Positions 6,331 through 13,031 of a DNA stretch of 64,000 nucleotides are shown in pieces. The notes beneath the pieces were generated by a model. The model was not told the origin of the DNA. It searched no databases and saw only the letters and a program-made list of their open reading frames with translations. The translations under genes were made by a program, and so were the position numbers. Source of the DNA: Hypanus sabinus (taxonomy: Eukaryota); contig NC_082725.1 of NCBI RefSeq assembly GCF_030144855.1, forward strand, positions 20,832,001 to 20,896,000, given 5' to 3'. Position 1 is the stretch's first letter; the number at the start of each line of letters is the position of its first letter.

Positions 6331-6420
6331 TTGGTCGGAACTGTTGCGCCGAGCATCTGCGTTCCGGTCCGATACAGTGTTGACAAGGACAGTGTTGCGG
6401 AAGCTGCGCTGCTGGTAAGA
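5850..6420. promoter_or_regulatory. Probable bidirectional CpG-containing promoter between ASTE1 (+) and a divergent gene (-)
   Basis: Local CpG enrichment, several ETS-like cores (cacttccg about 6002, ttccgg about 6362, gcggaag about 6397), and outward-facing splice donors on both strands: + CTG|GTAAGA at 6414/6415 and - CAG|GTAAGA at about 6250. Confidence 0.6.
6350..6414 (+). other. ASTE1: Putative non-coding exon 1 of ASTE1 (possibly shared with HSCB)
   Basis: Strong donor CTG|GTAAGA at the edge of the CpG-rich zone. The ASTE1 ATG exon begins with an acceptor at 13017/13018, so an upstream exon is required. The start coordinate is approximate. Confidence 0.5.
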
Positions 6421-6949
6421 GGCTGCTTTTGTCGATTGTTCATTGAGTAATATAAGAAACTTATTTCACTGAGAATAAAGCCGTGCCTCGAAGAGTGAAC
6501 ATTTCCTTCGTATACATCCCGTGTAGAAAATCTCTTTAATCACGTTCATCTCGCAGCACTATTCTTGCACTCCTTTGGTTATATTTTTATAAACTGCGAA
6601 TTCGGGGGGGGGGGGGGGGTTACTGCTGATGTGTAATTCGTTATGTTTTTACCGAAAAATACATTCCTCTTTCTCTGAGAGTGTTTCAAACAACCTTCAA
6701 GTTATGCTACTTCGGCTTCCCGGTGATCACTGTCAGCCTCAATTTTAATTTTTGATGTACACAGTGACAATCACTTAAAGACGACTTGTTACGATGCACT
6801 TATGTCAGTAGACTTTTGATTCAAAGAGTAAAACTCGGTGTCTTCATTGTTACGTCGTCCGGTGCAAACAAACTGTAGAGATCTGCAGCCAATAGAATTG
6901 CACAGAGAAATTAAATTCAGAGATGAACAGGAGTTCAGAAATGGAAGTG

Positions 6950-7960
6950 AGCAGAGAGCTCACAAGATTATGGAGCCGGAGGCTAGTAAAGAAATGGAGA
7001 GGGACCAGACTGGGCAGGGCTTTGGAAAGAAATAGATAGGCATGTGAGGATCAAAACTTGTAAAAGAATGGCAAGATAAAGAAAAAATAGGGCTTCTTTG
7101 GTACGTAAAAAGGAAATGACCAACAAAGGCCCCTGAGAGACAGAAATCTGTGAGGAAACGGCAGGGTGATGGAACAAATACTTGATAAGACAGTCATCAC
7201 CAAATAAATCACAAAAATAAAACTGATTAAAAAATGCAAGAATCAAACAAGATTAACAAAATGAAGAAAATTAGTATTAGTAAAAAGAGTATTAGAGAAG
7301 TTGGTGAAAGGTGATAAATTCCAAGCATCCTCTCAGTGGTTTACATTTTCAAATAAGCAGCTGTGGGAAAAATTAATACTCTGGTTATCCTCTTGTAAAA
7401 TGTTACAGGTTCTGGAATGGTTCTTGCAGATTGGCAGGTAGCAAATGCAACTCTCATTTTTAAGAAAGAGAGTTATATTAGGGAACTGCAACTTGTTTGC
7501 TTGACAGCAGTGTTCATGAAAGTGCTTGGATCTGCATTGGAGGATGCAATTACAAAAAGACCAGAAAAGGAAAAGGTTCATTTTGCTCTCAAAAGTATGT
7601 ATACAGAATACAACTCTGAGATTCACCTTCTCCAGATAGCCATTAAATACAGAAAACCGTAATAGTAGTTGAAAGAAAGACATCAATCGCCCCTCCAATC
7701 CGCAAGAAAAAGAAACTAAAACTCGCAAAACTCTAACCCCTCCCTGGCGGAAAAACTAGCATCAACCAAACCCCCAGCGTGTCCGTGGGAAGCGACTTGA
7801 ACCAGCGATCCCTCCGAGGGCTCTTCCTGAACGAATATGAGTAAGCAAAGTCGTATGATTTTACAAATGGGAAATCATGTTTGAGTGATCTACTAGAATT
7901 CTTTAAGGATGCACGTAGTAGGTAAGGAGTAACCGCAAGATTATGCCCTTGAATTTTCAC
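6950..7960 (+). mobile_element. Decayed CR1 ORF2 fragment interrupted by another repeat (about 7600-7830)
   Basis: DWQVANATLIFKK...LVCLTAVFMKVL (7417-7662), resuming at gggaaatcatgtttgagtgatctactagaattcttt (GKSCLSDLLEFF). Confidence 0.6.
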
Positions 7961-7972
7961 GAAGTTGCCAAT

Positions 7973-8233
7973 ATCAGAATCAGGTTTATTATCACCGGCG
8001 TGGGACGTGAAATCTATTAATTTAGCAGTAGCAGTTCACTGCAATACATAATCTAGTAGAGAGAGAAAAATAATAGTAAATAAAATAAAACAATAAACAA
8101 ATAAATCAATTACGTATATTGAATAGATTTTTTTAAATGTGCTAAAACAGAAATACTGTATTTTTTTTCAAGTGAGGTAGAGTCCAAAGCTTCAATGCTC
8201 ATTTAGGAATCGGATGGCAGAGGGGGAGAAAGC
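7973..8233 (-). mobile_element. 3' end of a Rex1/L2-like LINE
   Basis: Begins atcagaatcaggtttattatcacc; the same terminus occurs at about 10255 (-), 12785 (+) and 16985 (+). Confidence 0.65.
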
Positions 8234-8322
8234 GGAGTGTGTGACTTGAGGCTTCTTCACTGCAGAGAGCGGGGCGCTTTCAGACTGTTCGGGACAGGGG
8301 GCAGTCGCGGTGAGCCGAGGCG

Positions 8323-10254: not shown

Positions 10255-11095
10255 GATCTGAATCACTTTTATTATCACTGGCATATGTCGTGAAATTTGT
10301 TAACTTAGCACCAGCAGTACAGTGCATTACATGATAATATAGAAAGGAAATAAATCATATACAGTAAGTATATGTATATTAAATAGATTCTAAATAGCCC
10401 ATAACAGATGACACCCAGGAACTTGAAATTGCTCACTCTCTCCATTTCTGATCTTCTATAAAGATTGGTTCCTGTTCCCTCATCATACACTTCTTGAAGT
10501 CCACAATCAGCTCTTTGGTCTTACTGACATTGAGTGCAAAGTTGTAGCTGTAACGCTACTCAACTAGCTGGTATGTCTTGCTCCTGTACGCCCTCTCATC
10601 TCCATCTAAGATTGTACCAACAATGGTTGTATCATCAGCAAACTTATAGATGGTATTTGAGCTATGCCTAGCCAAACAGTCATGGGTATAGAGAGAGTAG
10701 AGCAGTGGGCTAAGCACACACCCCTGAGGTGAACCAGTGTTGATCGTTAGGGAGGAGGAGATATTATCACCAATCCACACAGATTGTGGTCTTCCAGTTA
10801 GGAAGTCTAGGATCAATTGCAGAGGGAGGTACAAAGGCCCAGGTGCTGTAGCTTACTGATAAGGACTATGGGAAATATGGTATTAAAACGCTGAGCTATA
10901 GTCAACAGACAGCATCCTGACGTGGGTGTTTTTATTGTCTGGCTGATCTAAAGCCAAGTGAAGAGCCATTGAGATTGTATCTGCAGTAGACCTAATGTGG
11001 TGATAGGCAAATTGTAGGGAGTTCAGGTCCTTGCTGAAGCAGGAATTCATTCTAGCCACAACCAATCTCTCAAAGCATTTCATCACTAGAAGGCA
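10255..11095 (-). mobile_element. Rex1/Babar- or L2-like LINE RT fragment
   Basis: ORFs with [31 protein letters not shown] and KFADDTT. Confidence 0.8.
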
Positions 11096-11324
11096 GCTCA
11101 CACTACTCTTATTGGCATCTGTTTGATTTCACATTTCCACTTTACTTTCAGATTTACAGAATTTTACTCAAGATTATGGACTGTTTAGTTTAAATCAAAT
11201 GTGTTTGTGGAGAAAAGAAAATGATGATTTGTAAATGTATTTTGGTGATTAAGGTTCCTTAAAGACTAGTTTGAATTTTTGAACACAAGTAAGTCAGTAG
11301 TCTATTGGAATGAAAGAGTTAGTC

Positions 11325-12460
11325 ATGGAGTCATAGAACTAAGGACAGAAAAAGGCCTTTTGGCCAATCTAATCCATGCTAAACTGTTTAAACTGCCTAG
11401 TCCCATTGACTTGCACCCAGGCCCTCCATACCCCTCCCATCCATGTACCTATTCAAACCTCTCCTAAATGTTGAAATCACATCCACCACTTGTATTGGCA
11501 GCTCATTCCACACTTTCACCATTGTTTGAATAAGTTTCCCCTCATATTCCCTTGAAACATTTCACCTTTCACCTGAACCTATGACTTATAGTTGTAGTCT
11601 CTCACCCAACATCCTCGTAGACTTTCTCTGTATTCTTTCAACCACCTTTACATCTTTCTTTTAGGTAGGTGACCAAATCTGTACACAATACTCCAAATTA
11701 GGCCTTGCCAACATCGTTTACAACTTCATAACATCCCAACTCCTATACTGTGTGCTTTGATCGATGAAGGTCAATGTGCCAAAAGCTTTCTTTACGACCC
11801 TATCTACTTGTGACACCATTGTCAATGAATCCCAGAACCTTTTGTTCTATCTCGTTCCTCCGTGTCCTACTGCTCACTGAGTAAGACCTACACTGGCTGC
11901 TCCACCCAAAGTGCAACACCTCACACTTGTCTGTATTAAATTCCAGCTGGTTCAGATCCTGCTGCAAATTTGCTGTCCACTACAATCTTGGTGTAAAATT
12001 TCTCTGTATTCTTTCAAACTTATTTACATCTTTTATGTAGGTAGATGACCAAAACTGCACATATGTCAAATGCTTTGCTGATGTAGGCAATTGCACTGCC
12101 CTGGTAACTTTCCTAGTGACATCTTTGAAAAAGTCTATAAGATTGGTTAGACACGACCTACCACACGCAAAGCCATGCTGACTATCCCTATTTATTCCCT
12201 GCCTATCCCAAATACTCATATATCCAGTCTCTTAGAATAACTTCCAATAACTTTCCCAGTACTAATATCAGGCTAACTGGCTTATAATTTCCTGGTTTAT
12301 TCTTAGACCATTTCCTAAACAGAGAAACAACATTAGCTATCCTCCAATACTCTGGTACATCACCTGTCGCTGAGGATGATTTAAGTATCTCTTCTAGGGT
12401 CCCTGCAACTTCTGTACTTGTATCCCACAGGGTCCAAGGGAAAACTTTGTCAGGTGTTCC
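11325..12460 (-). mobile_element. CR1 LINE fragments
   Basis: SQHGFACGRSCLTNLIDFF (11980-12219) plus a CR1 3' end near 11330. Confidence 0.75.
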
Positions 12461-12489
12461 CTCAGTACCAGCGCATGCCCTTTTCTCAC

Positions 12490-12787
12490 TGTTAACGTCA
12501 GGTAGGAGTTACAGAATCCTGAAGGCACACACTCAGCGATTCAGGAACATCTTCTTCCTCCCTGCTGTCTGACACCTAAATGAACATTGAACCCGTGAAC
12601 ACTACCTCACTTTTTAAATATATATTTCTATTTTGCATGATTTTTAATCTATTCAATATATATATATATATATATACTATAATTGATTTACTTACATTTT
12701 TTTTCTTTTATATTATGTACTGCATTGAACTAAGTTAACAAATTTCACAACACATGATTAACACAACAATAAACCTGATTCTGATTC
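12490..12787 (+). mobile_element. Rex1/L2-like LINE 3' end containing a (TA)n tract
   Basis: Ends aataaacctgattctgattc; (TA)n at about 12656-12675. Confidence 0.6.
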
Positions 12788-13031
12788 CTTGGCCACTCTG
12801 ATTTGCCTGAAGACAGCCAACACTTCCTGTAATTGTATAGGTTCTATACCCTCACTGCTGCTTTGGATCAGTTATATAGATGCTACAATTGTTTGGTATC
12901 AAAAGGTGAAAAATATTGATATGGTTAATTCGGTGTTTACTTAGCTGCAAATGACTTGTACTTCCACAATATTCACATGTGATCTAACAATACCAACCTA
13001 TTCTGTTTGTTACTTAGGATGAAGTTGCAAA

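Follow-up and report, generated by a model that had tools for sequence, protein, structure and literature searches.

Retrogenes that reside within host genes include Mcts2 in H13, Zrsr1/U2af1-rs1 in Commd1 and Utp14b in Acsl3. Conserved vertebrate genes that encode two cistrons include SNURF-SNRPN, GDF1-CERS1, RPP14-HTD2 and MFRP-C1QTNF5. Retrogenes riding on host genes and these few conserved two-cistron genes are the closest known kinds to the locus described here, in which a single-exon gene for HSCB, the mitochondrial iron-sulfur co-chaperone, lies upstream of ASTE1, which encodes a DNA-repair nuclease, on the same strand, in a 64-kb stretch of the genome of the stingray Hypanus sabinus (source assembly GCA_030144855.1; the whole stretch is hereafter called the window). 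We propose, with a probability of roughly 0.6, that the two genes form one transcription unit, in which the exon that bears HSCB is spliced to ASTE1 and the product is a two-cistron mRNA and not a pair of mutually exclusive mRNAs. For the stingray, this proposal is drawn from conserved splice sites.

The HSCB copy resembles the Mcts2/H13, Zrsr1/Commd1 and Utp14b/Acsl3 pairs in that it would be an intronless processed copy of a multi-exon gene, placed in a host unit on the same strand and coupled to the splicing and polyadenylation of the host. Unlike in those pairs, the HSCB copy is the sole one and the parent gene is gone, the arrangement is common to chimaera and elasmobranchs, and the exon is spliced onto coding exons of the host, with both open reading frames (ORFs) on one mRNA. 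Like SNURF-SNRPN and the other two-cistron genes, the locus would combine two full-length, unrelated ORFs in a single capped, spliced mRNA, and it shares with RPP14-HTD2 a mitochondrial protein among its two products. It differs from that group in the genes concerned, in an upstream cistron that would derive from retroposition, and in the putative status of second-cistron translation. Conjoined read-through transcripts offer a third comparison, since there too splicing runs from a donor of the upstream gene to exon 2 of the downstream one. Unlike in such transcripts, the upstream gene here has a single exon, and its donor lies 14-50 nt after the stop codon, is invariant in stingray, skates and chimaera, and takes part in what looks like the main path in skate samples. 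Our literature searches found no paper linking HSCB with ASTE1, and a search for HSCB together with 'retrogene' returned a single paper, on an unrelated matter.

If the proposal holds, the locus would be a very old, lineage-wide case of a retrogene replacing its essential parent through fusion with the 5' end of a host gene, and would illustrate one survival route for a promoter-less copy. If the two-cistron mRNA is indeed the main ASTE1 message, it would also offer a natural vertebrate system for the bypass of a long upstream ORF, or re-initiation after it, and for the avoidance of mRNA decay. There is a consequence for annotation as well: shark and ray genome annotations list HSCB and ASTE1 separately, and their expression counts will be entangled.

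Materials and methods

Positions given below are those of the window unless a contig is named, and a slash within a motif marks a splice boundary. RNA evidence comes from public short-read assemblies of skate (Logan contigs, which are de Bruijn assemblies). Three contigs from three runs in two run series carry the junction discussed below: L002 (SRR13269369), L008 (SRR2097079) and L010 (SRR13269351). The proteins encoded by the full-length skate ASTE1 contigs are 98-99% identical to ASTE1 of Leucoraja erinacea, a species for which four identical ASTE1 proteins are on record (XP_055514542, XP_055514549, XP_055514559 and XP_055514569). The skate contigs that are colinear across HSCB (L001 and L003-L006) may derive from RNA, open-chromatin or genomic libraries; L001 supplied the skate HSCB sequence for comparison, and contig L009 of Callorhinchus milii the chimaera locus. 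One further contig, L011, contains a transposase adapter and is spliced cDNA, which hints that the SRR112416xx series is RNA.

Donor sites were scored with a rough matrix, and the scores serve for ranking only. An Rfam scan of 5500-14500 gave zero matches at the gathering score.

Results and discussion

Skate RNA joins HSCB to ASTE1

In the source annotation, a NEK11-like gene on the minus strand is followed by a single-exon HSCB of 262 aa and then by an ASTE1 of 651 aa that starts at 13032. The best matches of the ORF that begins at 13032 are named ASTE1. The features that make up the proposed unit are the following:

8323-9111, plus strand: HSCB ORF, a single intact exon of 262 codons, intronless, encoding a tetracysteine motif, a J domain with HPD, and HSCB_C

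9123-9130, plus strand: conserved weak 5' splice site GGG/GTAAAC, last exon base 9125, 14 nt downstream of the HSCB stop, used in skate RNA

9126-13017, plus strand: putative HSCB-ASTE1 intron, with reverse-transcriptase fragments of long interspersed nuclear elements (LINEs), an inverted repeat, and candidate poly(A) signals ATTAAA (9432) and AATAAA (10149)

13004-13017, plus strand: 3' splice site of ASTE1 exon 2, ...ctgtttgttacttag/, the homologous boundary of which is used in skate mRNA

13018-14381, plus strand: first coding exon of ASTE1 (exon 2), with ATG at 13032, domains XPG_N and XPG_I_2, and donor GAA/GTAAGA after 14381

18598-18805, 19616-19811 and from 24511 (to 24893), plus strand: further ASTE1 exons, from the mapping of L002 and from boundaries read in the sequence

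In the three skate contigs, the 3' end of HSCB (in L010, its 3' untranslated region) is joined to ASTE1 exon 2 at ...cctggg/GATGAAG. L002 and L008 start within the HSCB frame, cross its stop codon, pass through about 40 nt of a CCAAG-type repeat to ...cctggg, and then read GATGAAGCAGATTGCATTGGAAC-ATG of ASTE1 exon 2. L010 has the identical junction with a different repeat allele. At the junction point, two other contigs (L001 and L005) read cctggg/GTAAAG and continue into non-coding sequence; therefore, the break in skate falls at a GT donor. The sequence to which HSCB is joined is homologous to the stretch that follows the AG at 13017 of the window. On the window, L002 is colinear with 8900-9121, 13025-14381, 18598-18809, 19612-19812 and 24512-24893. 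It represents a properly spliced mRNA: of its four junctions, the first connects HSCB with ASTE1 and the other three are correct ASTE1 junctions. Two-ORF RNA with a canonical GT-AG junction is thus present in skates, in L002, L008 and L010. The junction is found in three of the four informative skate ASTE1 contigs; L002 and L008 cross it without a break, and in those two samples it looks like the main path.

The window has a counterpart of the skate donor, reading cccggg/GTAAAC at 9125/9126, a site that was absent from the list in an earlier note made on this DNA from its letters. The octamer GGGGTAAA is invariant in stingray (9123-9130), in two skate alleles and in chimaera, within a stop-to-donor spacer of 14 to about 50 nt that is otherwise unalignable, and it occurs once in the 64-kb window. 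With A at +5, the donor is weak, scoring 4.5-5.5 in stingray, skate and chimaera. An acceptor before G(A/T)TGAAG was also found in all three. In the window it reads ttacttag/GATGAAG at 13017/13018, 14 nt before the ASTE1 ATG at 13032, just where the earlier note had placed it, and it is a real site: the skate mRNA contigs begin exon 2 at the homologous G/GATGAAG. Both of the splice sites that are joined in the two-ORF RNA of skates are conserved.

A polymorphic CCAAG/CCAGG microsatellite with at least three alleles lies between the HSCB stop codon and the donor in skates (L001 1617-1651, L003-L006 and L010). Many contigs break there.

An intronless HSCB in cartilaginous fishes

Five species have, in their annotation, a single-exon HSCB with ASTE1 downstream on the same strand: Hypanus sabinus, Mobula birostris (gap between the genes of 6.4 kb), Scyliorhinus canicula and S. 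torazame (gaps of 2-2.5 kb), and Callorhinchus milii (gap of 4.2 kb, with ATP2C1 beyond). The arrangement is common to chimaera and elasmobranchs and is therefore older than the split between them. Each of the cartilaginous fishes listed in an orthologue search, including Hypanus sabinus with its genome, has one HSCB protein, and the Callorhinchus UniRef entry for HSCB is the same gene as the intronless ORF. The intronless copy is the sole HSCB of cartilaginous fishes.

HSCB of bony vertebrates has several exons and adjoins CHEK2. Splice isoforms are listed for many bony-vertebrate HSCB entries and for zero entries from cartilaginous fishes, which fits a multi-exon gene in bony vertebrates. 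The protein encoded in the window is like bony-vertebrate HSCB (HSC20) in its tetracysteine motif, its J domain with HPD and its HSCB_C domain; unlike the bony-vertebrate gene, the gene is intronless and sits between NEK11 and ASTE1. This new location and the absence of a second copy are as expected of a processed retrogene. No A-run follows the HSCB ORF, and neither a poly(A) remnant nor a target-site duplication was identified there. A missing poly(A) remnant would be expected of an insertion old enough to be common to chimaera and elasmobranchs.

The HSCB ORF is intact and under constraint. The HSCB_C domain (PF07743) is matched over the full profile at residues 185-256 (E = 2.6e-15). The J domain (PF00226) scores 27.0 bits, slightly below the cut-off of 27.8, with LHPDNF kept in stingray, skate and chimaera, and the tetracysteine domain (PF18256, HscB_4_cys) scores 22 bits, below the cut-off of 26.2, with CWRCG...FFCPSC aligned in the same three. 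The stop codon is a TGA at 9109-9111. In the alignment, the skate and chimaera start codons fall opposite position 8353, where the stingray ORF has its second in-frame ATG. The ratio of nonsynonymous to synonymous substitution rates (dN/dS) is 0.33 between stingray and skate and 0.59-0.75 in comparisons with chimaera, dS being compressed by the 86-92% G+C content at third codon positions (GC3). Identity to HSCB of mammals, birds and teleosts is 35-47%.

The GC3 of 86-92% is found in HSCB of stingray, skate (L001 888-1616) and chimaera (L009 5035-5784), and the adjoining ASTE1 exon 2 has only 30-44% GC. Candidate causes of this persistently extreme composition include the promoter CpG island and GC-biased gene conversion. 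In the Callorhinchus UniRef entry (P0102, 159 aa), residues 14-159 are identical to the genomic ORF and the first 13 are mismatched. In the underlying model, a different 5' piece is attached midway through the intronless ORF, which represents either mis-annotation or a real splice inside HSCB. Also present in the Callorhinchus assembly is a second copy of the HSCB 5' flank, comprising the GTGAGCC motif and the first ~70 coding bases, about 2.7 kb upstream of the first (L009 2200-2420 versus 4880-5100). Both copies are preceded by a long GTGTGGCTGTGAGGGG-type minisatellite; this may be a real tandem duplication or an assembly artefact.

The transcription start and the region upstream of HSCB

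The features that bear on where transcription begins are the following:

8200-9130, no strand: CpG island coinciding with the HSCB exon, 72% GC (65-80%), ratio of observed to expected CpG (CpG obs/exp) about 1.0, flanks at 30-45% GC

8307-8315, plus strand: proximal donor-like GCG/GTGAGC (GGTGAGCC), score 9.4, score in chimaera 11.1, no skate counterpart

8252-8265, plus strand: acceptor-like cttcttcactgcag/, the candidate of the earlier note

6251-6414, no strand: CpG-rich patch of 165 bp with divergent donors, CAG/GTAAGA at 6250 on the minus strand and CTG/GTAAGA at 6414 on the plus strand, containing the 'exon 1' of the earlier note

5877-5890, minus strand: first coding bases of the NEK11-like kinase, ATG at 5890 and then donor AATAG/GTAAAC, head-to-head with the HSCB/ASTE1 unit

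Two stretches look unmethylated, namely the HSCB island at 8200-9200 and a CpG-rich stretch of low GC content at 5800-6700 (CpG obs/exp 1.0-1.5) by the NEK11 ATG. A scan of window composition identified no CpG island between 9300 and 13017. Therefore, if the ASTE1 promoter is a CpG island, ASTE1 transcripts start at or upstream of HSCB. The HSCB island is likely a local promoter with a first exon. A local start is consistent with promoter-type CpG content across the HSCB exon and with GGGGCGGG and GGAAGGAAGT motifs just before the skate ATG. An upstream start is consistent with the patch that carries divergent donors and with the pyrimidine tract and adjoining CAG that stingray, skate and chimaera all have 48-86 nt upstream of the ATG. 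We favour the local start by about two to one.

The patch at 6251-6414, whose plus-strand donor scores 9.0, is a candidate ancestral bidirectional promoter of NEK11 and ASTE1 with two short first exons. When 5000-13100 of the window was compared by blastn with the chimaera locus and the skate contig, only the HSCB coding sequence, the donor region and ASTE1 exon 2 aligned, and no conserved upstream exon 1 was found. The acceptor-like tract at 8252-8265 is passed through by skate contigs L001, L003, L004 and L006, which are colinear with upstream sequence.

The NEK11-like product has 607 aa and a Pkinase domain; according to the annotation, its coding sequence starts 2433 bp upstream of HSCB, on the opposite strand. 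A strong minus-strand acceptor, ttttttttctatag/, ends near 6117 (6117-6131), and the perfect minus-strand donor CAG/GTAAGA lies at 6250 (6245-6253). Judging from this pair of sites, NEK11 may have a non-coding exon 1 at about 6250-6330, which would stand back to back with the 'exon 1' of the earlier note. An uninterrupted run of 16 G at 6606-6621 lies between the 6414 donor motif and LINE fragments.

The proposed two-cistron unit and translation of ASTE1

In the mechanism that we propose, an ancient processed copy of HSCB would have inserted at the 5' end of ASTE1 and become the only HSCB of cartilaginous fishes. The unit would start most probably at the 5' edge of the CpG island, at ~8230-8320, and its first exon would contain the whole HSCB frame (8323-9111). 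The weak conserved donor at 9125/9126 would connect it with ASTE1 at 13018, where the first coding exon begins. The product would be a two-cistron mRNA consisting of HSCB, a spacer and ASTE1, with HSCB as the cap-proximal frame; if the stingray RNA is spliced as in skate, the spacer before the ASTE1 ATG would be 28 nt (14 + 14). Given the weak donor, part of the transcripts may terminate within the intron as HSCB-only mRNA. Such an mRNA could arise by intronic polyadenylation, for which the ATTAAA at 9432 and the AATAAA at 10149 are candidate signals.

For translation of ASTE1, ribosomes would either bypass the few AUGs of the HSCB exon or resume initiation once past the HSCB stop codon. Alternatively, ASTE1 would be made from rarer isoforms without the HSCB frame, formed for example via the donor at 8309, which may act in some lineages as an alternative 5' splice site that removes that frame. 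The HSCB exon has only two or three ATGs in stingray, skate and chimaera, all of them in frame, which leaves scanning to ASTE1 possible. Around the HSCB start, position -3 is a purine but +4 is C; therefore, scanning past it is possible as well. Close to the ASTE1 start lies one further feature:

13019-13084, plus strand: short out-of-frame upstream ORF of 21 codons, which opens with the second base of exon 2 and overlaps the ASTE1 ATG

The ATG of this upstream ORF, at 13019, is common to skates and is replaced by TTG in chimaera. Read-through of the HSCB stop codon into ASTE1 was considered and rejected, as the 28-nt spacer puts ASTE1 out of frame.

Translation of ASTE1 is the weakest part of the two-cistron model, and the most interesting part if it holds. 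In its strongest form, the model would give ASTE1 of cartilaginous fishes no leader or promoter of its own. Since before the chimaera/elasmobranch split, ASTE1 would have been expressed only from a capped two-cistron mRNA with the sole, essential HSCB first, and would be routinely translated after an ORF of 240-260 codons by leaky scanning or re-initiation. The mRNA would escape nonsense-mediated decay, and the weak donor would set the ratio of HSCB-only to HSCB+ASTE1 mRNA. We advance this extended form tentatively and think it rather doubtful as a whole.

Several points count against the proposed unit. Use of the junction in this stingray, or in any stingray, rests on conservation, and the stingray donor at 9125 scores 4.5 versus 6-9.4 at other sites. 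Contig L007 starts one base before ASTE1 exon 2, which fits a second upstream partner or unspliced RNA. An end of this kind is expected at a branch of the assembly graph, and in that sample exon 2 is therefore preceded by at least one other sequence, either the unspliced intron or another exon. There is a second patch that looks unmethylated, with a strong plus-strand donor at 6414. Several skate HSCB contigs are colinear for 150-887 nt upstream of the ATG, which would place the start beyond the CpG island if they are derived from RNA. With respect to translation, re-initiation after an ORF of 240-260 codons is normally inefficient, and an mRNA with several exon junctions downstream of its first stop codon is an expected target of nonsense-mediated decay. 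The absence of out-of-frame ATGs does not count as evidence of selection for leaky scanning: shuffles of synonymous codons give zero such ATGs in 25-58% of cases (P = 0.25, 0.58 and 0.46), and the protein sequence and the GC-rich codons predict their absence.

Competing explanations

The alternative that survives best, although we consider it unlikely, is that HSCB and ASTE1 are two independent genes. HSCB would have its own CpG-island promoter and a nearby poly(A) site, ASTE1 would be transcribed from another start, and the junction would be a low-level read-through by-product without a role. Read-through between neighbours on the same strand is common in vertebrates, the donor is weak, L001 and L005 run unspliced past it, and NCBI files HSCB and ASTE1 separately in every species. 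However, stingray, skates and chimaera all have the identical donor octamer within a spacer that cannot otherwise be aligned, and the junction is carried by three of four informative skate ASTE1 contigs and is the apparent main path in the L002 and L008 samples. Nor does the stretch from HSCB to exon 2 offer ASTE1 another CpG-island promoter.

Less probable again is the model of the earlier note. In that model, here extended by a promoter shared with NEK11, a non-coding exon 1 at ~6350-6414 is spliced to 8266 to give HSCB mRNA with intronic polyadenylation, or to 13018, either directly or via a 44-nt mini-exon (8266-8309), to give ASTE1 mRNA. Every motif that it named is present in the window: CTG/GTAAGA, where 6414 is the final base of the exon; cttcttcactgcag/, which ends at 8265; the 57 nt of 8266-8322, free of ATG, before the ORF start at 8323; and GCG/GTGAGC at 8309/8310, 13 nt before the HSCB ATG. 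The notion of one HSCB/ASTE1 transcription unit agrees with the skate RNA contigs that join both genes, whereas that of mutually exclusive products does not, as the RNA seen carries both frames. The junction seen departs after the HSCB stop codon and not from 6414 or 8309. In the skate RNA contigs examined, we identified neither use of these two donors nor any of the three junctions proposed (6414 to 8266, 6414 to 13018 and 8309 to 13018).

An upstream promoter of this kind would fit the patch at 6251-6414, which is CpG-rich and has strong donors pointing away from it on both sides, as a bidirectional promoter would. The intron offers candidate poly(A) signals at 9432 and 10149, and the start of L007 hints that exon 2 has a second partner upstream. 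The putative acceptor has in its favour the pyrimidine tract and CAG that precede HSCB in stingray, skate and chimaera, but four skate contigs cross it unspliced, and a CpG obs/exp of about 1 over the entire HSCB exon argues for a promoter there and not for an exon in mid-intron. For the 8309 site, conservation is partial. Its GT is common to chimaera (GAG/GTGAGCC, 34 nt before the ATG), but skates read CCTGAGCC, with no GT, so this donor does not serve as a general mechanism for ASTE1.

By themselves, the two donor motifs cited in the earlier note are no more than chance gives. On each strand, a donor motif of such strength turns up about every 2 kb. Over both strands the window contains 63 copies of GGTRAG, versus 48 ± 8 in shuffled sequence, with three occurrences on the plus strand of 5890-13017 (6414, 7921 and 8309). 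Eight GT sites in this interval score about as high as 6414 (9.0) and 8309 (9.4). Taken alone, the motifs thus say little, and it is conservation and RNA that matter.

We dismiss as highly improbable the explanation that the skate junction is an artefact of short-read assembly: the contigs are de Bruijn assemblies and the junction adjoins a CCAAG-type microsatellite where contigs often break, but the break coincides exactly with a GT donor and with the AG acceptor that ASTE1 uses, three runs show it on two different microsatellite alleles, and L002 is otherwise a perfectly spliced ASTE1 mRNA.

Repeats in the introns and flanks

The HSCB-ASTE1 intron contains a 128-nt inverted repeat (9452-9579 and 9637-9764) whose arms are 99% complementary and are separated by a 57-nt loop. 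It begins 326 nt after the donor that follows HSCB, just 3' of the ATTAAA at 9432. The repeat is probably a transposon-derived hairpin, and it could influence intronic polyadenylation or splicing. Degenerate fragments of LINE reverse-transcriptase ORFs were identified at 6880-7960 (plus strand) and at 10556-11101, 11980-12219 and 14891-15976 (minus strand). These fragments separate the CpG patch on the NEK11 side from the HSCB island, and they fill the HSCB-ASTE1 intron and intron 2 of ASTE1.

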